Assembly (NCBI GenBank): GCA_965112735.1
Contig: OZ218959.1
Location: 2,232,001-2,296,000, forward strand
Origin: Phaeosaccion multiseriatum
Lineage: Eukaryota > Protista > Ochrophyta, other classes
Direction of reading: 5' to 3'
Length of the DNA stretch: 64,000 nucleotides
Below, piece by piece: positions 8,243 to 58,034 of the stretch; the stretch's first letter is position 1; the number at the start of each line of letters is the position of its first letter. The notes under the pieces are model-generated. The model saw nothing but the letters and a program-made list of their open reading frames with translations, did no database searches and was not told the origin of the DNA. Both the position numbers and the translations under genes were made by a program.

Positions 8243-19530
<11,288 letters not shown>

Positions 19531-41800: not shown

Positions 41801-44800
41801 TCTGCGGGGCCCCTCTGTTGTCATCCTACTGCTGCTGGTGTATCATCAACTCGTGGTGTTGGCGCTGTTGCAGCGGGTGACGCAAGAGCACGTGAAGGCG
41901 CCTCCTCCTCCCCGTCTCCTTCAGTGAATGTGGTAACGCCGGTCCCACTTCGCCCGAGTGCCGCTGGTGGTAAAGGAGGAGCAGCAACAGGAGGAGGAGG
42001 AGGAGAAGGTTCTTGGAGTAGTAGAGCGGGCAAGGGCGAGAGCAACAACGACGGTGCCGGTGCCGCAGCAGGGGGAGGGGGGGGGGACGCCCGATGGAGC
42101 GGGACCATCCTTGCCGCATCTATGGTGTCCTCTCCGGCAGGGCAGGTGCAGCCCTTCGCTCGTCCTCAGCAGTTGGTGACACAGCAGGCCGTGCCTGGTA
42201 TCCGAACGCACAGGAGTGAGAGCGGGGCGGCCCGTGAGGAGGCCCGTCGACAGCGACTGAAGGCCATGACTCACAAATGGCTGGTGCAGGTGGGGCTGAC
42301 CAGCGACTACGAGGAGGGCACGGGTGCTGCTGCGGTCGCTGCGGCTGCCTGTGTGAGTGAAGCGGTGGACGCGGCGAACTGTGACACCACCAACTGTGTG
42401 TGGCGGCCCATTGATGCCGCTGTACGGGAGGAGGAGGAGAGGCTCAGCAGTGTTGGAGGAGGAGAGGGCGGACTTGCTGTGAGCGGCGGTCTCCGTCTCA
42501 CGTCCATGACGCCACCGGGCTATGATGCTGCTGCAACGACACCATTGGCAGGTGGTGGGTGGGCGGCACCGCACGCACCGGCTGCAGCAGGAGGGGGGAG
42601 GAGGGGGAGGCAGGAAGAGCAAAGGCGGGCGAGACGGAGAAGGAGACACCGCTGTATCTCCAACTGGAGCAGCTGCTGGTGGAGGTGGAGGTGGGGGGGT
42701 TGTGCATCCCCCAAAGATCGAAACGAGCTTGCCTGGCTTGGCTGGCACCAAGAGAGGGACGCTCTCCTTCTCGCCCGTGATACCCGCCGCCGGAGCAGCA
42801 GCAGCAGCAGCAGCAGCAGGTGCCTCGCCGCCGCCGGGGGTGGGGAGTGCTGGTGGTGGAACTCCCCGAGGAGGAGGAGGAGGAGGAGGAGGAGGAGGGA
42901 CTCCTCTGCCGATAGCGGCGCCCCCCGGAGCCTTGCTGATGCACGGCTCTCTGCAGGTGCACGAGTTTTGTGCAGAGGCCATGGCGACCCTTCGAGGCAC
43001 TCGCAGGACGCGTTTGCAGGCCAAGGCAAGGAAGGCTTTGCTCGAAGATGCGGCGATGCGAAAGGCAGGGGGCCGCAACAGGCCGCTGGGCAAGGATCGA
43101 CTCGGTCGCCTTTTTTGGCAGTTCACAGCGGACCCTAAGAAGCTGCTCATCCAGCCACCACCACCGCCCGGGGGGGGGGGTGATGGGATGATGGGTGTTA
43201 CGGGTGTTAAGGGTGAAGGTACCGACCTTGGTCATGTCGTAAGTCGGCAGCAGCAGCAGCCGGAGCAGCAGCAGTGGCAGTGCTTTGAGCACGTGGGCGA
43301 CTTGGCGGCAGTGTGCCTCGGGCTGAGCGCTCTCATTCCCCAGGAGAGAGCCCTGCAGTGCGCCATTCTTCGCTTCTTCCCTCAGGTAGGACCACCACTG
43401 AGTGTCAGCCTGTGCATTGCTTTGCTTTACTCTTTGCTTTTGCGTTTCGCTTTGCTCGACGTCTGACCACGAAACTTGTCTGTCTGCGCCCTGTCTGTCC
43501 ATCTGTCTCCACCATCCGTGACTCGGATGCCCGCCCACCCCTACTCCTCTGCTTCCATCTTTGTCCTCATCCCTGTCCTTCCCCGTATTGCGCTCCCTTT
43601 CGTGCCTTTCCTTGGCGGTGGTGCCTCCTCTCCCTTCCTTCTCCTCCTCCTCCTCCTCCTCCTCCTCCTCCTCCTCCTCCTCCCAGGTGCAAGCCCGGAT
43701 GCGCAGTGAGAACTTTACCGAATCTTTCGCACACCACGCCTTGCATCTCCCCTCACGAGCCCTCACAAGACGCAAGCAAGCGCTTCGAGCCCTGCAGATT
43801 CAACCCACACGCCCCCTTCCACTGCCACTAGCGGCAGCGCGAACAAACAGTAGCAGCAGCCGGGGATCGAACTCACGCTCGGGTACGCCTTCGCCGCGAC
43901 GGCGTGATGGTGGTGGTGGTGGCGCGGCATCGGCTGGAGCTGTCAGCCCTGAGCAGGCCTCTGTTGGGGTGTCGACGGCTGACACCACTGAAGCTGTGGC
44001 GAAGGCCGTGTTGCTCTTGTCCAAGACCGACAATGGAGATGGAAACGTGGCAGGAGAAGAAGGACATGGGCAAGCAGGCCAAGGAGACCAAGGGCAAGTA
44101 ACGGAAGCAGTTGGTGATACAGAACGAGCAGCAGCAGCAGCAGCGGAAGGCCCCTTCAAGAAGGGTGACATGGTGGTTGTTCGGAGAGGTCTGGGTCTGG
44201 CGTACTCTGCCGAAGTGTTGGAAGTCGATGGAGATACGGCGGCGGCGGGTGGAGTTTGCCGTTACAAAGTGCACTTTGCAGGGTGGGGCAGGGCCTACGA
44301 CTGCTGGGTGGCAAAGACCCAAGTCATCGGTCTTTGCTCTTCCCCCGGAGTCGCAGCTGCCCAGTCTGAGCTCAATGCTCTTTGGACGGAGGAGCAGCTG
44401 AGGAGAGGAAAGGTGAGGGAGGTCCTTCCTTGCTTCCTTCCTTCCTTCCTTCCATCCTTCCTTCCTTGCTTCCTTCCACCCTTCCTTCCTTCCACCCTTC
44501 CTTCCTTCCACCCTTCCTTCCTTCCTTCCTTCCTTCCTTCCTTCCTTCCTTCCTTCCCTCCTTCCTTCCTTCCTTCCTTCCTTCCTCCCCCCCTTCCTTC
44601 CTTCCTTCCTTCCTTCCCTCCTTCCTTGCTTCCTTCCTTCCTTCCTTCCTTCCTTCCTTCCTTCCTTCCTTCCTTCCTTCCTTCCTTCCTTCCTTCCTTC
44701 CTTCCTTCCATTCCTTCCTTCATTCCTTCCCTCCTTGCTTCCTTCCAAGGCCGTCGGGGCCCAGATGGATGGGCGGAAAAGGGAGCGTTGCCGTCTATTT

Positions 44801-46488
44801 CTCGTCTTTCTGTCTGTTTCCCGAACGCCTTCCTGCTCTCGGCGCTCTATTCGTCTCGCCCCCCTCCCTGTGGGCCCCCATCTACGGACGGAACCCCTCA
44901 CCTGTGCATCCCCCTACCCACCCACGCCTCCCACCCACTCACCACTCTCCCACCCACGCCTCCCACCCGCTCCTCCCACTCATACCTCCCAACCCACCCC
45001 ACCCACCCACCCACCCACCCACCCCCTAGCTGGAGTCTCCTAGCCTCCTGCCCTGGCTGCGAGCGAGCGCCTCGATGGACAAGGAGGGCCGTGCCCGAGG
45101 CTCCCGGCCGCACCCCGTGTTTGTGGTGGAGGAGGTGCTGGCCGACGTCGCTCTGGCGGCTCGGGCGGGACTGCTGTCGCTGGAGGCGGCCCTTCCCCAG
45201 GGGGCCCTTGTGTACGGACAGACGAGATGGAGCCCTGACATGACGCAAGTGTGGCTCAAGCAGGTGGGTGGGGGGCTCGTATATATATATATGTGTGTAT
45301 GTGTGTGTGTGTGTGCTTGTGGGTGTGTATATATGTTTTTGGTGAGTGTGCGTGTGTGTGTTTGTGTGGCTGTGTGCATATTTTGTGTGTGTGTACGTCT
45401 TATCTTTGTGGGTGTGCGTGTGTGCAGTAGCGTGTGTGCCGCCCAACCAACCAACCAACCAACCAACCAACCAACCAACCACCCAAACCCAACCAAACCA
45501 AACCAACCAACCAACAGGTGTACAACGCGGACTCTGCTCTCTCTCTGATGGAGGCGTGCGTGTTGCTCGAATCGTGTATCAACCCCCAGTGGCTCCGGTC
45601 AAGAGCCAAGGCCTTTACCCAAACCGTGCTGCCCGGGTACTGCCACGCCCTCCGCAATGCGTCCTACAACGCCGTGTGTTTCCGAGTGTGGGTGTTGGAT
45701 CGCACCCTACAGTACGATCGTGTCTCCTCCGTCAACAAGAGCCACAAGAAGAGAGGGGAGGGAGGAGGAGGCATGAACAGCACCGAACGCAAGAGCCACA
45801 AAAAGAGGACCTACCCCAAGACCAAGACTTTCTACAGCGCCGCCGCCTCGTCCTCGTCTTCGCCTCGTCCTCCTCCTCCCCCTCCTTCTTGTTCACCTCC
45901 TCCGCCTCTTTCTGCTGCTACTGCTGCTGCTGGGGCTGGCGCCGGCATGGTGGCTACTGCTACTGCAGGTGGAGCGGCAAAGTGAGTGTTGTAGAAGTGA
46001 CGGAGCATGCATGGCCTATCAGTCAGTCCGTTTGTTCGCTCGTTCGTTCAGGAAAGGGAGAGGAGGGGAGGGGAGAGGCGAAGGCTCGTCTTCAACCAAA
46101 GCCATCCATTCATTCATTCTATCATCTAGTAGCTCGTTCCTTCTTTCCTTCGTGATGCGCGTCTGCCCAAGTTGGTTATACAGCCCCTCACTGCGCTGCT
46201 GTGGTTGCGCGTTGTTATGTGGAGTGACAAGGTAGTGCCTTTCCTTTTCCTTTTTGATGTTTGCATGCGTTGTGTCCCCTGTCTCCAGTCTGTCTCCTTT
46301 CGCCAGCTTATCGCCCCTTCTCGCTTCTCTGGACCTTTCTGTCTCCCGCATTCCTCCTTTCGCCCCCTCGTCTGTTTGCTGCTCATCGCATTTGCGTAAT
46401 GTCTATTCGAACAGGGGCCGAGGTTCACCCGCCCTCCCTGCAGGCCGCAAGCTCACCAAGACCAAGTGCAAGACCAAGAAGACGTAAA
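27327..46488 (+). CDS. Giant multidomain chromatin reader, MBD9/BAZ-like (FYRN-FYRC, DDT, bromodomain, PHD, WHIM/WSD, Tudor-knot/chromobarrel), ~25 exons
   Basis: FYRN (LGTVLLISLG; HLYPVGFKCSR), FYRC (FQIDVEG..FLGTNLAQVWADVL; AVERMIEGLDGVELCQRY), DDT (LLQLWDFVHTFQEAL), bromodomain (CGSVLFALM..YYETVKHPLAL..VRLVFANVACY), PHD (CAVC..IFCDRCDAKQHTRC..VPFGEWYCRAC), WHIM2 (PLGKDRLGRLFW), Tudor-knot (YSAEVL..YKVHFAGWGRAYDCWV), MBD9-like C-terminus (LLSLEAALPQGAL..LLESCINPQWL..RVWVLDRTLQY). Two apparent 1-nt frameshifts in G-runs (~41200, ~42595). Last exon 46444-46488 is tentative. Confidence 0.85.
29505..29975. repeat. Intronic minisatellite, ~40-45 bp unit (CCCCTCCCCTCCCCCTCATCCCATCCACTGCCATCCCA) x~10
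   Basis: Repeated CATCCACTGCCATCCC core up to the 3' splice site at 29980. Confidence 0.9.
37810..37920. repeat. 10-bp intronic minisatellite (CCCACACCTA) x~11
   Basis: Perfect tandem units inside the intron splitting the PHD finger. Confidence 0.95.
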
Positions 46489-46568: not shown

Positions 46569-46622
<54 letters not shown>

Positions 46623-47003
46623 GGACGGAAGGGAAGCAAATACATACAAACACACACACATATATGTATATAATATATAATATATGTGTTTAGTAGTAAT
46701 CCCCATTCTTCCAAAACTCAAGCCGTGGAGCAGGAGACGCCATCCACCCCACCCCACACGTGTCCAGCAGCCTCACACAGCACCACCGAGACCATCAAAG
46801 AGAGCAAAGTCTTCTTTCGTAAAGAATGGTTTCAGTATATTGTATACAGGTTTAAAAAGGTGTGTGCAGGGCAGGTCTCGACCAGGCGACTGCTCCGGCA
46901 ACTGCTCCACCCCGACTATCTATTCTACAATTGTCTGTACAAATTTTGTGAGTTACCCTTTCCCCTCCAAATTCTTTCCTGGCCGAGGGGAACGCTGTCT
47001 TCC

Positions 47004-48099
47004 TCACGTCCCTCTGGCGGGCAGCGTGGCCCCCTTTTTCTTTTTGGGGAAGGAGATGCGTAGCACGGAGTCCCTGAGCGTCGAGGACGACGCAGCACCG
47101 CCAGGGACGGGATCGAGCATCGCATGGCGCAGGGGGACGCAAGCAGGAAAGAAGGGGGGGGCGAGGGCGTAGGATTATGTTAAAAACGTGGTCGCCTGAA
47201 GCACCCCTTGCTCCTCCAACTTTTCTCTCTCTATACCCAAATCAACTCACTCCTTGAACTCCACCGTCGCCCCGGTAGCGGTGATGAAGTCCGGCAGCAC
47301 GTAGGTCCTGGACATGCAGCCGTACTTCCGCTCATGTAGGCAGAAAACCTCTCCCTCCCGCATCGGCTCGTGATCACTCCTCGATGAGATGACTAGCTCT
47401 CGAGTCTGCTGATTGAAGGTGACGCTGCGGGGCGGGAGGTCGGGCGAACAAGGCAGCGAAGCAAGCAAGAGGAGAGATTGGTTTGAGTGTTGGAAGAGCA
47501 GAGGCGATGTCGCGCAAGGGCACTTAACTGGACGTCATCCCTCTTCACATTTGGCATCTCGATGGAGATAAAGATGGCGTTGGTGCTTTCCGAGCAGTTC
47601 GTGGGCATGGAGGGGGGAGTTCCAGGAGGCGGAGGCCGCACCTTGCCCGGTGGAGAGCTCGAAAGCAGCTCGATGAGCTTTCCAACCCCCGTGTCCTTTC
47701 GGCCCTGGAAGAGGTTATCAGATTACTGATTACGGCCGGCGCAGCCGGCCTGATTACTGATTACTGCCGGCGCCAGCCGGCCTGATTACTGATTATGGCG
47801 CCAGCCGGGCCTGATTACTGATTATGGCCGGCGCCAGCCGGGTCTGATTACTGATTATGACCGGCGCCAGCCGGCCTGATTACTGATTATGACGGGCGCT
47901 AGCCGGCCTGATTACTGATTATTGGCGCCAGCCGGCCTGATTACTGATTATGACCGGCGCATACTGTAACCTCTTCCAGGGCCGAGTCCTTGTCTTCTCC
48001 AGGAAGCGGAGGCCGCACCTTGCCCGGTGGAGAGCTCGAAAGCAGGTCGATGAGCTTTCCCACCCCCGTGTCCTTGTCTTCGCTACTGCTGGTGTCCAT
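47004..48099 (-). CDS. Small heat-shock protein (HSP20/alpha-crystallin domain), copy A, carrying a MITE in exon 1
   Basis: Segments 48099-47971, 47704-47529, 47424-47251, 47073-47004 give ...ESTNAIFISIEMPNVKRDDVHV...ERKYGCMSRTYVLP...AT VEFKEDSVLRISFPK. Same two intron positions as copies B and C. Intact only if the MITE is spliced; its donor GTTAAG is weaker than the GTGAGT of the paralogues. Confidence 0.75.
47699..47985. mobile_element. 287-bp non-autonomous DNA transposon (MITE), Introner-like
   Basis: Perfect 19-bp TIRs TCGGCCCTGGAAGAGGTTA (47699-47717 / 47967-47985); 6-bp TSD GTCCTT (47693-47698, 47986-47991); interior is about 7.5 copies of a 29-33 bp unit. Removing the element plus one TSD restores the HSP20 frame (PGEDKDTGVGKL). 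Confidence 0.92.
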
Positions 48100-48218
48100 C
48101 ACAAAAACAATGGCAAAGAGCAAAACAAAAGAGTCCGACACCCCTCGGGAAAAAGGTGTATGGTCGAGAAATGCCCCCTTTTTCTCATTTCTCTATTCCC
48201 TCCCCTGTGGACGCGACC

Positions 48219-49132
48219 ATGGACGAGAGAGCGAGTTTGAGTGACAGCAGCGCGAGCGGAGCAAGTACCGCGTGCGAGGGCTGGGAGGTGGAGCGGCTGG
48301 CTTTGGACGAGGGAGAGACTTTGTATGACAGTCGGGAGAGCGGAGCAAGCTCTGCCTGCGAGGCCTGGGAAGCTGAGCCTCTGGATTGGGCGGAACTGAG
48401 CCTCCACACTCCCCATCACGAAGTGCCGTTCCGCCTCGAGTCCCCTCAGATGCTGACCAACTGCTCAGAGAGCGATGAGGCCGTGTACGTTAGTTGTGAG
48501 CTTCCAAATGTGAAGATCGAGGACATCAAGTGAGTGGGGCTTGGCTTGGCTTGTCTTTCGTCATCCTTCCTCGAGCCGCCGGGGCCCATCGCTCTCACAC
48601 CCTCGCCCTCGCCTACCTCGTTTGGCCACCCAGACTTTTTGTGCCTTCGGTTTGGTTGATGTAGAGGTCGCGGTTTGTCCCTCTGTTGACTACACCAACC
48701 TCCGCCCCCCCACCCCCCAGCGTCGACTTTAACGAGAGGACTCGAGAGCTACGCATCACCGCGGAATCACGGCCGGAGCCGCTGCGAGCTGGGGAAGTGT
48801 TCTGCAGACAAGAGAGACTGTATGGGCCCATGAGCAGAACCTATGCTCTGCCTGGCATGGTCACCTCGGACGGGGCCACCGTCCACTTTGATAATACGTG
48901 AGTAGTTGGGGGAGGGAAGTACACTGAGATCGGTCGTAGAGACTTGCTGCGTCGCTATGGCTCCTCAACTCAGGCTGGGTTTGACGTACGCAGCGAAAAG
49001 GATGCCTCCCTCCTTTCTTTTGAAAGTGTCCCTCCACTGCTTGTCTCCGCGCTCCATCTTTCTTGCTTTGCGCTCTCCATCGGCAGCGACGGTATCCTTC
49101 GCGTCGCCTTTCGCAAGAACTTGACTGGGTAA
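48219..49132 (+). CDS. Small heat-shock protein (HSP20), copy B, 3 exons
   Basis: Exons 48219-48529, 48721-48897, 49087-49132: ESDEAVYVSCELPNVKIEDINV...ERLYGPMSRTYALP...ATVHFDNTDGILRVAFRK. Confidence 0.88.
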
Positions 49133-50048
49133 TGACTTTGAACTCCAAGTCATACCCCGCGGCAGCGGACTCACATTCTTTCAATCATTTTTAATACGCG
49201 CCGACATCCCCCGACGGACGAGGATGCGTCGCTCCTGCCCCCCTCTTTCCAGCGAGGCGAGCGAATTAATTCACGCTCAAGGGGCATCGCGAGCGACTCT
49301 CCGCCAGCCGTCGCGCCGAAAGGGAACAAAGTCCAAGCCGTCAGTTGCAGCGCTGAGCGAACGAAGCGGCGAGGAGCGGCACGAGGGTAGAGTGAGAGAG
49401 CGAGCGGGATGGGTATGCCTGGACGGGCGCCTCGGTCATCGACTAGTCAGCGTGTCGGATTTCACGCCCTCACGCACGCCCTCACGCACGCACGCACACA
49501 CGCACGTCGGTGAGGCGCTCCAGGTGCCCCTCCTGAGTTGACAGGATACGTTCAAGAGTCAAGTCACGTGGTTTGCTTGCTTTTCTCATTTCCTTTAAGT
49601 TAGATATATACAATGCGATATATAATGAGTGAACTATACACATTGCACATATTCAGTGTTCGTGATGAAGGAGCAGGCTCACGCTCACAGCGAAAGCGGC
49701 TGTCGATATCGCTCCGTTGGCTCTCCTTGGCGCGCTCCGACTCCGCCTCACCCTTCGTGAACCTGCAGGGAGCTTGCATGCTTCTCCTCTACCCCTCTTT
49801 CGCGCCCTCTCCCCCTACCACTTTTCAGACAGCTTGGCGAGACGGCACCGAGAGTCCCCTCCCTCGCTTTTGTCTCGGGGCTTATTACGACGCGGCCCGT
49901 GCAAGTCGATGGTTTAGCCTTACTCCCCAATGGGAAGAAAGTTTCTCGCGTGGAATGCGGTTTGTCGCGGAGGTCTCTGGCAAGCTGAGGCCTTTAAAAG
50001 CCTTTGCGTTCCCAGTGCCTCCGGAAGAGCCCCCCCTTCTCCCTCCCC

Positions 50049-51240: not shown

Positions 51241-53717
51241 TCACAAATTCATGCCTACAGTAATGACCTTGTCGTATACGTCTCGAAAGCCCGACTGCCC
51301 TCCGTAGCGCCGCCGCAGCTCCCCGTATGCTTCCATATCGTACAGCTGCGCAAAGTGCTCTCTGGTGTAGTAGGCGTGGCTGTAAAACACCTTCCTGCCC
51401 CCCGCTGCGGTGAGCACGCCTTCCATCTCTATATTGTCTCTCTGAAACGCATACGTGCTGCTCTTCCTTGGGAGACCGTAGGCACCCACATTGCAGTACA
51501 TGCCCCTGTCGCCAGGCACGGAGAGTATGTTCTCCTTGAGCTGTTGGTTGTGCATGGGAAGCAGCCAAAGTGGCCAGAGCTCCACCTTGTCTTGCAGGTA
51601 CGAGACAAAGCCAGGCATTTCATCCACAGGGAGCATAAAGTCCTGAAGGCATTGTTGTGTGAGTGCGTGTCGGTGTGTGTGTGTGTGTACGTACGAGTAT
51701 GTACGTGTGGGTGGGTGGGTGGGTGGGTGGGTGGGTGTAGATGGGTGTACGGATGTGTGTGTGAATTGGTAAGGGGGAGGTGTCCGAGCAGTAGCAGCAG
51801 TAGGGATACGTGAGACTCGTCGTGGCTCACTCTCGCCATGAAGGTCAAACAACTCAACTTTTTTCACTCACCCAGTTCATGGCACATACGCACACGACTT
51901 CCCCCCTCCCACTCACGCGCCAGGCACTCACTCACGTACTCACCCACCCGCCCACCTACCCACTTACCCACTCACCCACCCACTCACGCACCAAGCACTC
52001 ACTCAACTAACCACCCACCTGCCCACCCACCCACCCACCCACCCACCCACACACACACTCACCCACCCGCCCACCCATCCACCCACCCACCCACTCCCTC
52101 ACTCACCTGCAGCACGAGCTGATGCGTGGGAAAAGCCCACGGGAGCGCCTTGGACAAGGCGAAGAGGCTCGCGCTGGAGAGACCGTCCCCGAACAGGCGG
52201 CCCACGGAATGCGGCACCTTGAAGCTCGCCATCCAAAAGGCGCCGCGGTCGTGTCGGAAGAGGTAGTCCTCGGTGGAGAGAAAGAAGCTCCTGGTGCTAC
52301 CATTCGACCTCGAGGGGTTCGCTGAAGCAGCAGCAGATGCTGGTGAGGGGTCTTGATTTGTGGTGGTGGCGCTTGGCTGGCTCCACTCCACAAGCTTGTA
52401 GAACCACGGCGAGTAGAAGGAGCTCAAACTGTGCGTAGGGTGTTCGGCAGCTTCGGCGTCGTCCCGGCTCGAAAAACTCCCCTCCACCGACACAAACGAC
52501 GTCGGACCAAAGCCAAAGCCCTCCAAAAATGCCACGTTCTCTCCTCCTTCGCCTGCCGTTCCTTTCCCTCCGTCACCGTCGCTCTCTCCACCTCTGCTAT
52601 TCGTTGCGTCCCCCTTCCCTTTGAGCATCTTAAACACTTCTGCCGCTTCGAGAGCCGACTCGTACCATGTAGTCGTGACCTTCACAAATGGCAACGCCTT
52701 ACACAACCGAATTTCAGCCGCAGTGATGATGGCTAGCGAGCCGTAACTGCCCGCTATACCGTGGAACAGGTCAGCACCACCTGCCTCGTCCTCCTGTGCA
52801 GAGACCATCATTACTTCCCCGGTCCCCAGGACCACCTCGTATCTGAGGGCCGTGTCGTGAAAGAAACCTTGCCTAAAGCTAGAGCTCTCTGCAGCGAGGC
52901 CCTGCACACTACCACCCACGGTGATGCCTCGAAACTCTGGCCAAGAGGAGCAGCGGCAGTAGAGAGCATTCGCGGGTGGAGGGAGGGTGGGATTAAACGC
53001 TGCAACGGGGAGAAAGCGAAGGCCAATACTGCGTAAAATGAATTACTTTGCACAAAACAATGTGAAGGAGACCCAAGACCGGGGCAGGGTCTCCCCCCGG
53101 AGGTGTGTAGCTGGACACGTGGGACTGCCCGTTTGTAAAACTTGACCCCCCCCCCCCCCCCGGAGGAAAGAGGAGCAAGAAGAAGTTGGGATACATTTGC
53201 ATACGACTCATCACCCACCCGGAACTACACACGGTATCAAGCCCATAGGAAGCAGCTCTTGAACCAGCTTCTCCATAGACGCCAAGGGCTCCACCCACGC
53301 GGAGCCGCCGGGCTGCAGCCCCACATGGTCTCCGTCAACAGCCTCCTCTGCATCTTCTGCGTCTCGGGTCTTGACACTGACTATTCTGTCCAGCTCTGAA
53401 ATGTCCACCATGAGAGTGTCTTTCTTGTAGGCCTCCGAGCGCATGGTGTGCCCTGATCTCTTCCTCTTGCGGAGGGTGATTAGCTGGTCCGGAGGCTGTC
53501 GCTCTTGGATGGTGCTTCTGATGGCGGATACGGCCCGATGGTGGGCCTCGTCTAAGCCGTAGAAGGTACCGCTGCTGCTGGTGCTGGCATCTTCGCAGCT
53601 TCCACTACCACCACTACTGCTGCTGTCCTCTACTCCTCCTGTTGCTGCTGCTCCCCTCTGCGAGGATGCGGCTAAGAGGAATATCAGGACCACAGTTTCC
53701 GTAGCTGTGACCCGCAT
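51241..53717 (-). CDS. FAD-binding (PCMH/VAO-type) oxidoreductase, delta(24)-sterol reductase (DHCR24/DWF1)-like, 3 exons
   Basis: Exons 53717-53219, 52936-52107, 51642-51241. Motifs VEPLASM, VVPEFRGITVGG...AESSSFRQGFF, DLFHGIAGSYGSL, DYLFRHDRGAFW, LQDFMLP, WPLWLLP, YGELRRRY...DVYDKV; hydrophobic N-terminus. Confidence 0.88.
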
Positions 53718-53885
53718 GGCTCAACAAGGGAGCTTCTCGTAGAGAGAGAGAGGAGGTGAGGGAGAAAGGAAGACCAAAAAGAGAGGGTGCGATCCATTTG
53801 TGAACCTTTTAGGAGCACAACACCCGAGCCTTCTCGCGATTTTGTTCCCGCCGATCAGACGATATCACTTTAAGAAAGGAAAGCT

Positions 53886-55300: not shown

Positions 55301-58034
55301 TCAGCCCAGCAGCGACTGCAAAGAGTCCATCGTCATCATCTCCTGCACTGCGAGAGACGCTGCCGTGGCCGAGTCAGCCGCGGCGATGGTGAAGAGCCGT
55401 TCTTCCGCAGCTGGCTCGATCGGCGAGTTGTGTGGCCTGCTAAAAGCATCGTCCGCAGGGGCTCGCAAGTACTTGGCGCGAAGGACACTGAAGGGCACGA
55501 CATCGCGGAGTGGCGGCTCTCGATCTTTGCTGGCCGTGTGCTGGGCCTTATTGCCAGCCATTCGGGCGGCAAGACTCCCTGCAGCAGCAGGAGGAGGAGC
55601 CTTCTCCCCTTGCTCTTGCTTCCGTCCTTGTTCTTTTTGGGCCGCCCCCAGCACGATATCGCGTACCTCGGCGTCCTCCCAATCGTGCCCATCGTCATCA
55701 TCATTATCATCATCGTCATCATCCCTCTCGCCGCCATTTGTAAGGGTATTGGTTGCGCCAGCTCCTGCCCCCTCTTCTGCTGCTCTTCTCATCGCTCTGT
55801 CGGTCCCACCACCGCCGGTGCCGATGCGCACTCTTCGACACCGCGCATCGATCCGGGAACCTTCCCCGCCCCGGACACGCATGCCCTCTCTCCAACCGGG
55901 CTTCTGACTCTCTGTGGCCATGAAGCGAGCGTACTTCTCTGCCTGCCCCCTCTTGTAGTCTTCCGCCAGTCCATCGTACATGACCTGAACAAGCTCTCGG
56001 TTGTCCGCCTTCTGACGGGCTCGAAACTGGTCTCTCTTTCCCTGAAAGAAGATTGGGCTGTGCCAGTGGGCCTCGGGAAGCTCTCCCTTGGGCAGCTGCC
56101 GGACTTTGCTGCCCTGGCGCTCGAGCTCGGCGTTTACAATGGCCTTCGCCAGCTCCACACGCCCTCGGAATTCGGCAACCTGTCGAGGGTATGGATTGGA
56201 GTCAGGAAGAGAGGGGAAAGATGATGGTCGACCACGATAAGAAGACCCTCGTTAATGACACGATGATGAACCTCATTAGCGACACTATAGGGACCCTCAT
56301 GAACGACATGACGACGACCCTCATTATCAACATTATAACGACCCTCATTAACGACACTATAACGACAGTCAATGAACTATAGCGACCCTCACTAACGACA
56401 TTATAACGACCCTCATTATCGACACTATAACGACAGTCAATGAACTATAGCGACCCTCACTAACGACATTATAACGACCCTCATTAACGACACATAAATG
56501 ACCCGCTTAAATGACACTAAAGTGGCCCTCAATAGCGACACTGTGATGACCCTCATTAACTACACGAGCCCAACAGGGTGTCAGTGTCTCGGTACCGTCG
56601 ACTGCCGGAGACTGGGCTTGAGATTGACCTCACTCCTGGAAGACGGTAGCGGGACACGCCCCTTGACATACGTACACCCCCTCTATCCTCTTGGACACCC
56701 CATATCATACAGACATCCCCTTCTCTGACTGCCATGGAGACAAGCCATCTCCTTGTCGGTATCGGCACCATTCATACCTGTCTCGGTACCCATCCGTCGT
56801 TATCCACGGGGTCTACGTCACACTTGCTCTCTAGCAGCAGCTGAGCCACCTCCATGGCACCAACCTCTGCCGCGAGGTGCAGTGGAGTCCGCCCGAGCAC
56901 ATCGCGGGGGCTTGGAGCGGCCTTGAAGTGGTGTAGGAGCAAGTACACTACCTCGGCACTGCCGCTCTGTGTGGTTGGGTTGGGTTTGGGTTCGTGCACC
57001 GGTCGTCCAGGGAGAGAGAGAATCGAAAAAAGAAGGGGGTGAGAGAGAGGGAGAGCGTGCGTGGAAAGAGAGAGGGAGGAGAGAGGGGAGAGAGAGAAGG
57101 GAGAGAGAGAGAAGGGGGGTGACAGAAAAGAGAGCAGGGTAGGGCCGCGTTGAGGCCCATCGAGAGATACGTGGATGGTCAAGATGATGCGAGACAAAGA
57201 ACGCAGCCTGTCCACGGAGCTCGCTCGCTACTTTAGTGAAGTATGTACAATGTGCTACCCCTCTGAGCAGCCAGACATACCGCTGCCGCCAAATGCAGAG
57301 GCGTCTCCTGCATGCTTCCTGTGGTCGGGGTGGGGGAGGCCTTGTGCTTGAGGAGCACCTGCACACACTTGCGGTGGCGGTTCTTGCAGGCCAGATGCAG
57401 CGGTCTCCACCCCTTGCTGGTCTGTCCCTCCACGAGGGCGTTATTCTCGAGCAGGACGCGGACCAGCTCAACATTGCCCGCTTGACACGCGAGATGCAGG
57501 GGAGTCCAGCCCCCCTTCATGAAAAATATCATTACAGAAGCAGAAGAAAGGAGGGAGGGGACGAGTTTCACTCGGACGTATGTGCCTATGGGGGTCGCTT
57601 GCCCGCTTGCCTTGTTGCGAGGAGAGACCATCCCGGCGAGGCGAAATAGGACTGCCGCAGATGAATAGGACACTGTACCGTTCACTTACCTCATCAGCTG
57701 CGTTAACATTGTATCCCTCCTCGATGGCTTTGCGCAGCTGCGTTGCTCTCATGGAAACTGCAGCCCTCCCGAAAAAGGGCCTGTACAGCTTCTGCCTCTC
57801 TGTCGAAGGCCTCCCACAGATCTGGCAATTCGAGGTGCACCGAGCGTTGATCTTCCCACATGTGTGGCAGTACCAATTGGATGCTTCTCCCTCATCAGAA
57901 CTGCTCACAGGACCGCTCTCTTCTCGTTCAACCATGGCGCCTACTGTTGATGCCTCTCCTGATCTGCGCCCCTCCATCCCTGATAGAAGCGGTGGAAAGG
58001 TCCGATCCGAGGACCATGCAACAGAGTCTGCCAT
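55301..58034 (-). CDS. RanBP2-type zinc finger + ankyrin-repeat protein, 4 exons
   Basis: Exons 58034-57690, 57514-57281, 56966-56778, 56179-55301, all phase 0. WYCHTCGKIN...CQICG zinc finger; GWTPLHLAC, GWRPLHLAC, ETPLHLAA, RTPLHLAA ANK repeats. Confidence 0.88.
56240..56560. repeat. Degenerate ~24-bp intronic minisatellite (ACGACCCTCATTAACGACACTATA)
   Basis: About 12 degenerate units with a higher-order duplication (GACAGTCAATGAACTATAGCG twice). Confidence 0.85.

Follow-up and report, generated by a model that had tools for sequence, protein, structure and literature searches.

A young transposon with splice-like inverted ends in exon 1 of a clustered sHSP gene

Introduction

Exonic insertions of the maize elements Ds and dSpm and of the nematode element Tc1 are spliced out via cryptic sites in or near the element ends, giving in-frame altered proteins. 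This removal is usually inefficient and accidental, and is not a property of the whole family.

Introners derive mostly from DNA transposons, and the ways in which they recruit splice sites are varied (PMC9860276, PMC12130899, PMC11282704). An earlier, sequence-only reading of the locus described here had presented introners as transposons that create introns in Micromonas and Aureococcus, and the literature agrees (PMC9860276, PMC11282704). The introners of Aureococcus anophagefferens have both splice sites within the element and lengthen the message by 12 nt, four from the element and eight from the target duplication (Gozashti et al. 2022, PMC9860276, Fig. 2F); they are cited as giving rise to introns whichever way round they insert (10.1101/2020.10.14.339549). 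Some classes of Polarella also make introns in either orientation (10.1101/2020.10.14.339549), and among the introner-like classes of Polarella glacialis and Symbiodinium some are bidirectional and several families can occur together in one genome (10.1101/2020.10.14.339549). The introners of Micromonas pusilla resemble MITEs in having inverted ends and a target duplication. One of their splice sites comes from an element end and the other from the 3-bp duplication; their removal is exact, and thousands of intronic copies are documented (PMC11282704).

Here we describe an element that interrupts exon 1 of an sHSP gene within a 64-kb window (the whole stretch of DNA analysed, 64,000 nt). By its anatomy it resembles the Aureococcus introners: both are short DNA transposons flanked by a target duplication, and the present element has two candidate splice sites and a predicted in-frame scar. 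Removal in either orientation, predicted for the present element, would be a further likeness. The predicted scar, however, consists of 21 (or 27) nt of the element plus 6 nt of a 6-bp duplication, as against 12 nt and an 8-bp duplication in Aureococcus, where splicing and the coincidence of elements with introns have been demonstrated. With maize Ds and dSpm and with Tc1 it shares an exonic insertion, candidate splice sites at the ends and in-frame predicted products. As in classes of Polarella glacialis and Symbiodinium, the inverted repeats end at the (here candidate) 3' splice site (10.1101/2020.10.14.339549), but in those classes at least one splice site comes from the target duplication and no extra codons are added, while both candidate sites of the present element are internal. 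The MITE-like form, the inverted ends, the target duplication and an end that could supply a splice site are shared with Micromonas pusilla (PMC11282704).

Three clustered sHSP paralogues

Three sHSP paralogues lie within about 4 kb of each other: A (48099-47004, minus strand), B (48219-49132, plus strand) and C (50987-50113, minus strand). Each has three exons, and the intron positions are identical. The second exons of the three genes are 59-64% identical to one another, and a profile built from them matches the solved sHSPs 3gla, 3gt6, 5j7n and 5ds1 at E values of 2.6e-6 to 7e-4; the best of these values bears out the earlier assignment of the host to an HSP20-type gene. Single exons compared with Pfam HSP20 gave E values of 0.07-0.12, which fall under the Pfam cut-off.

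Exon 1 of gene A starts with the ATG at 48099, ends at the donor CA/GTTAAGT and, with the insertion included, occupies 47529-48099 (delimited by sequence and paralogue comparison; a slash marks a splice junction throughout). Exon 2, the alpha-crystallin core, lies at 47251-47424 (profile and paralogue comparison) and exon 3, which begins with DSVLRISFPKKKK and extends to the stop, at 47004-47073 (sequence). Outside the insertion gene A is undamaged, with exons 2 and 3 and their splice sites intact. The donor of its first intron (47522-47528) reads GTTAAGT, compared with GTGAGTG in B and C; a single bulged base might let this site function, or the change may mark the onset of decay.

Length and sequence vary widely among the first exons of B and C, and both exons run uninterrupted through the insertion site, as had been noted before for these two paralogues. 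In the A protein the insertion falls within the N-terminal arm, which is under loose constraint. The N-terminal arm of B has an internal repeat that is visible by eye (SGASTACEGWE.. / SGASSACEAWE..). Genes A and B are divergent, with start codons 119 bp apart, and a search of the A-B intergenic region for heat-shock promoter elements found none.

Protein searches were nearly blank, and public collections contain no protein or transcript for this locus and no close relatives. Exon 1b gave no candidate among public proteins (in a search sized for 59-187 aa), exon 2 gave only two repetitive, unrelated matches among 1.84 billion representative proteins, and an RPC5-like open reading frame of the window had no match in public protein collections. 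This proteome is apparently absent from the collections, so that these blank searches are uninformative on expression.

A non-autonomous, high-copy element in exon 1

The transposon is 287 bp long (47699-47985). Its inverted ends, at 47699-47717 and 47967-47985, are complementary at 19 of 19 positions and separated by 249 nt. The hexamer AAGGAC in gene sense (GTCCTT on the plus strand) directly abuts both ends and forms a 6-bp target-site duplication, with the upstream copy at 47986-47991 and the downstream copy at 47693-47698 (sequence reading and window-wide search). The outermost bases of the element are TCGGCCC, and its ends begin TCGGCCCTGGAAGAGG. The interior is a minisatellite (47721-47960) of 7.7 direct units of about 32 bp that match at 87% (unit GATTACTGATTA..GGCGCCAGCCGGCC, from repeat analysis). 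Six to eight stop codons fall in each of the six frames, and the longest open stretch is 28 codons. Recomputation from the letters confirmed all of the structure given in the sequence-only reading, namely perfect 19-bp inverted repeats, a 6-bp duplication and a minisatellite within the coding sequence of HSP20-A.

Four sequencing runs, all of one sample and none on record as RNA, contain the locus; their contigs cross introns and intergenic DNA and are thus genomic. In one run (X1) the summed word depth is about 350,000-480,000 over 47636-47969 and about 500 in the flanks, and the ratio of element to flank is hundreds-fold in all four runs. The bin containing 16 nt of the inverted end stands at roughly 90-180 times single-copy depth, a depth that does not equal a copy number. 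Contigs whose flanks are unlike break off at precisely 47699, where the inverted end has its outermost base, and this shared break indicates that other copies of the element end at the same base. Genomic word depth and the lack of coding capacity also bear out the earlier description of a non-autonomous, multi-copy family. The element is a young, non-autonomous, high-copy cut-and-paste transposon in exon 1 of gene A, and the inverted ends, the 6-bp duplication, the lack of coding capacity and the contigs that break off at 47699 mark the whole of 47699-47985 as a MITE.

Within the 64-kb window the 19-nt ends have no further match at up to three mismatches (0.02 expected), and we found neither a second TCGRCC-ended element with a 6-bp duplication nor an autonomous partner, that is, a transposase element with the same ends. 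Some contigs match the 32-bp core as far out as 47717, diverge at 47716 and have another terminus, ..GGCCTAGGCCTCGACC, which points to a sister family alike in its interior and different at its ends. A contig of about single-copy depth, present in all four runs, omits 43 nt within 47922-47966 and has AC instead. This contig, whose shorter side is only 20 nt, may come from a different copy or from this locus with an array of another length. The 19-mer end also occurs once in each of three metagenome contigs, none of which holds the core repeat, and these single matches were dropped as chance rather than taken as further copies; among viral contigs neither the inverted end nor the core found a match.

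A tandem duplication around the insertion site

Exon 1 of gene A contains an 84-nt (28-codon) tandem duplication, and the insertion begins 12 nt into its second copy. On the minus strand, copy 1 occupies 47998-48081 and copy 2 occupies 47621-47997, where the element and the duplicated target split it into 47997-47986 and 47692-47621 (both delimited by sequence comparison). The copies differ at three of 84 positions (3.6%), and paralogue C carries the duplicated motif (..QLIKVLSSPP..) once. A divergence of 3.6% falls in the allelic range, as it would if the assembly had joined two haplotypes and so produced the duplication or the insertion, but the copy-specific letters lie in unitigs (46692-47658 and 48016-49503) that are continuous with unique flanks, have the same depth as these flanks and, in three of the four runs, are free of alternative letters. 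Run X4 has shorter pieces and a 1-nt deletion at 47612. In addition, no contig of the four runs bridges the empty site. An assembly artefact is thus scarcely credible, and the 84-nt duplication is genuine rather than two joined haplotypes.

The position of the element within copy 2, 12 nt away from the junction, leads us to read the duplication as a separate event, probably older than the insertion. An origin of the duplication together with the insertion was set aside, since the element is not at the junction of the copies. The numbers of mismatches, three in 84 nt between the copies and none in 50 nt of inverted ends plus target duplication, are compatible with equal age.

Candidate splice sites in the inverted ends

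In the sense of gene A (minus strand), the inverted end toward the 5' side of the gene (47967-47985) reads TCGGCCCTGGAAGAG/GTTA, with a candidate donor GT at 47970, and the end toward the 3' side (47699-47717) reads TAACCTCTTCCAG/GGCCGA, with a candidate acceptor AG that ends at 47705. These letters were verified on the minus strand and are those that had been proposed before, GTTA inward as donor and GGCCGA outward as acceptor. The donor side continues as GAG/GTTACA/GTATGC, so that a second candidate donor, GTATGC (47959-47964, with its GT at 47964), lies 6 nt inward of the first and in frame; the closely similar GTATGT is the inferred donor of an intron in an ankyrin gene at 57280. The candidate 3' splice region, CTGATAACCTCTTCCAG/GGCCGA (47705-47721), comprises a branch-like CTGAT, an 8-nt pyrimidine run and CAG. 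A third candidate donor is an exonic GT upstream of the element, AAG/GTGCGG (48013-48018), also in frame with the element acceptor.

For comparison we used nine local introns, inferred from conserved motifs and by comparing the paralogues: genes A, B and C contribute two apiece, a sterol-reductase-like gene another two and the ankyrin gene one. Their donors are GTGAGT (six introns), GTGGGT, GTATGT and GTTAAG, and the acceptor is CAG in all nine. They are 104-464 nt long, and the element would give an intron of 260-314 nt, depending on the donor. The element acceptor is near consensus and looks strong as a predicted site. By a hand count of matched donor-consensus positions, both element donors appear weaker than all nine local donors, with about five positions for GTTACA, which lacks a G at +5, and about four for GTATGC, compared with at least six for the weakest local donor. 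The exonic AAG/GTGCGG matches six positions in the same hand count, more than either element donor.

Splice sites are compared only qualitatively here, because a weight matrix built from the nine introns was overfitted (leave-one-out scores of -9.6 to 14 for real sites, with the element acceptor not positive). A donor consensus from hexamer counts was also dropped: GTGAGT occurs 291 times against 55 expected, mostly in simple repeats, with 46 occurrences in complex sequence. In the predicted RNA fold the two 19-nt ends pair, and the stem covers both donor and acceptor (-145 kcal/mol, z -5.5). Pairing of inverted repeats at introner splice sites need not block splicing (10.1101/2020.10.14.339549).

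When joined in silico, 47971^47704 and 47965^47704 give open products of 182 and 184 aa with scars of 27 and 33 nt, and 48019^47704, which uses the donor at 48018, gives an open product of 166 aa. The crystallin domain is intact in all three. Without splicing, translation would reach a stop at 47941-47943, inside the element, after 52 aa. The translations agree with the 27-nt in-frame scar and the peptide EDKDSALEE/GRKDTGVGK predicted in the sequence-only reading, and with its statement that the donor at 47964 is in frame. Its further proposal, that the symmetry of the ends leaves an equal 27-nt residue in either orientation, follows from the complementarity at 19 of 19 positions. The scars are in frame and stop-free in all three codon phases.

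As a chance control, the outer 7 nt of the inverted end were fixed and the inner 12 nt shuffled. An acceptor with a pyrimidine run arises in 2.7% of the shuffles, and the combination of this acceptor, a GT and an in-frame, stop-free scar in 0.1% of the shuffles, which preserve composition, and in 0.01% of random sequences. This is suggestive of a splice-like end beyond chance, although the feature was chosen post hoc and may be a single coincidence in the genome.

Splicing, disruption and other outcomes

Of the possible outcomes, removal of the element by splicing into its own acceptor seems the likeliest, with a probability of about 45%. A young transposon copy has inserted into exon 1 of one of three clustered sHSP genes, and the spliceosome would use the near-consensus acceptor in the 3' inverted end, so that the element would leave the message as a new intron of about 260-314 nt. 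The donor could be any of three in frame, GTTACA (47970, 27-nt scar), GTATGC (47964, 33-nt scar) or the exonic AAG/GTGCGG (48018), and each choice would leave the crystallin domain intact in a protein of 166-184 aa; removal through the donor at 48018, taken by itself, seems improbable. Splicing of this kind is favoured by the 8-nt pyrimidine run before CAG, the ending of all nine local introns, by candidate intron lengths within the local range, by three open splice models and by the undamaged exons 2 and 3 with their splice sites. The joint splice-like properties of the end are rare in shuffled and random sequences, and the N-terminal arm tolerates changes of length, as seen in the 28-codon duplication in A and the diverse first exons of B and C. 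Word depth and the contig breaks at 47699 further point to a high-copy family with a shared end, and precedents have been published in Aureococcus (PMC9860276) and Polarella (10.1101/2020.10.14.339549). On the other side, both element donors match fewer consensus positions than the weakest local donor, and the predicted fold buries donor and acceptor. Gene decay cannot discriminate between outcomes after so recent an insertion, and the splice-like reading was picked post hoc from one inspected copy. Two intact paralogues lie within 3 kb, so that a null allele would be cheap and loss of gene A affordable.

Plain disruption is a substantial possibility, short of even odds. Here the element would be retained, translation would end after 52 residues at the stop at 47941-47943, gene A would be a very young pseudogene and the splice-like letters would be coincidental. 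The weakness of the element donors beside the nine local ones fits such a coincidence, as does the predicted stem of the inverted ends over both candidate sites; the adjoining intact B and C would make the loss tolerable, and intron 1 of gene A is already off consensus (GTTAAGT, compared with GTGAGTG in B and C). Disruption is less easily reconciled with a near-consensus acceptor and with end properties that recur together in 0.1% of shuffles; that the rest of the gene is undamaged is a weak point against it for so young an insertion. Splicing into the element acceptor has a narrower form, which we consider doubtful, in which the family would be an introner whose palindromic 19-mer has become adapted to give donor and acceptor in any orientation and phase with a 27-nt scar, and in which the junction 47971^47704 or 47965^47704 would be used. 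The arithmetic and the stop-free scars hold in three phases, the perfect inverted ends give the symmetry, and the family is abundant by word depth, but GTTACA has no G at +5, GTATGC lies outside the inverted end and would be absent in the opposite orientation, and the exonic donor at 48018 is closer to the donor consensus by hand count. It is rather unlikely that the element is a true introner from an undescribed P/Dada-like group that makes 6-bp target duplications, with the 19-mer as a two-way splice cassette, a fixed, stop-free scar of nine codons, an intron caught at birth and the paralogues as the empty state. Finally, AAG/GT of duplication copy 1 (48018) could be joined to copy 2 (47641), which would remove the element and one duplicate and yield a protein of 145 aa, following the classic model in which duplication of an AGGT gives rise to an intron. 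The sequence GGCAAG/GTGCGG is present in both copies and the join is open and in frame; however, the acceptor, ccaccgggcaag, has no pyrimidine tract and ends in AAG where all nine local introns end in CAG, and the element offers a much better one 63 nt upstream. We consider this restoration very improbable. Outcomes other than splicing into the element acceptor or plain disruption share the remaining probability.

The proposed mechanism, with both sites carried, an in-frame scar and removal in either orientation, is already published. New, if confirmed, would be the family, the 6-bp duplication, the larger scar from the inverted end and possibly a transposon lineage. If splicing into the element acceptor does occur, the locus would show a dated, single-event birth of an intron, with the element, the duplication and the uninterrupted paralogues still visible, and if the element is retained, it would be an ordinary knockout in a redundant gene cluster; either outcome would add a new case and no new principle.

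Other features of the window

An Rfam scan of the 64-kb window returned no RNA family. Several simple repeats lie around the cluster. A (CACG)n / 12-mer microsatellite at 49463-49506 has a word depth of about 250,000, compared with about 500, and a (GA)24 tract occupies 46572-46619. The low-complexity tract at 43561-45243 translates as PSFLPSFL.. in one direction and as KEGRKEGR.. from the opposite strand, and then passes into repeats of the THPPTHPP type. Local introns are often simple repeats of the GGGT/CCCA type, for example at 51643-52106. This last example falls within a sterol delta-24-reductase-like (FAD-binding) gene of at least three exons (51244-53720, minus strand), an exon of which has its best public matches in the ochrophytes Chrysoparadoxa and Phaeothamnion, at only 33-39% identity; public sampling around the source organism appears to be sparse. 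The motif GTTGGTGATAC has 19 matches in the window at up to one mismatch, compared with 0.65 expected (for example at 10114, 23916, 34831, 35697, 38538 and 44110). Its usual context is ..GCA-GTTGGTGATAC-AGCA.. within CAG/GCA-rich tracts, where together with the next AG it reads as a 13-nt GT..AG unit.
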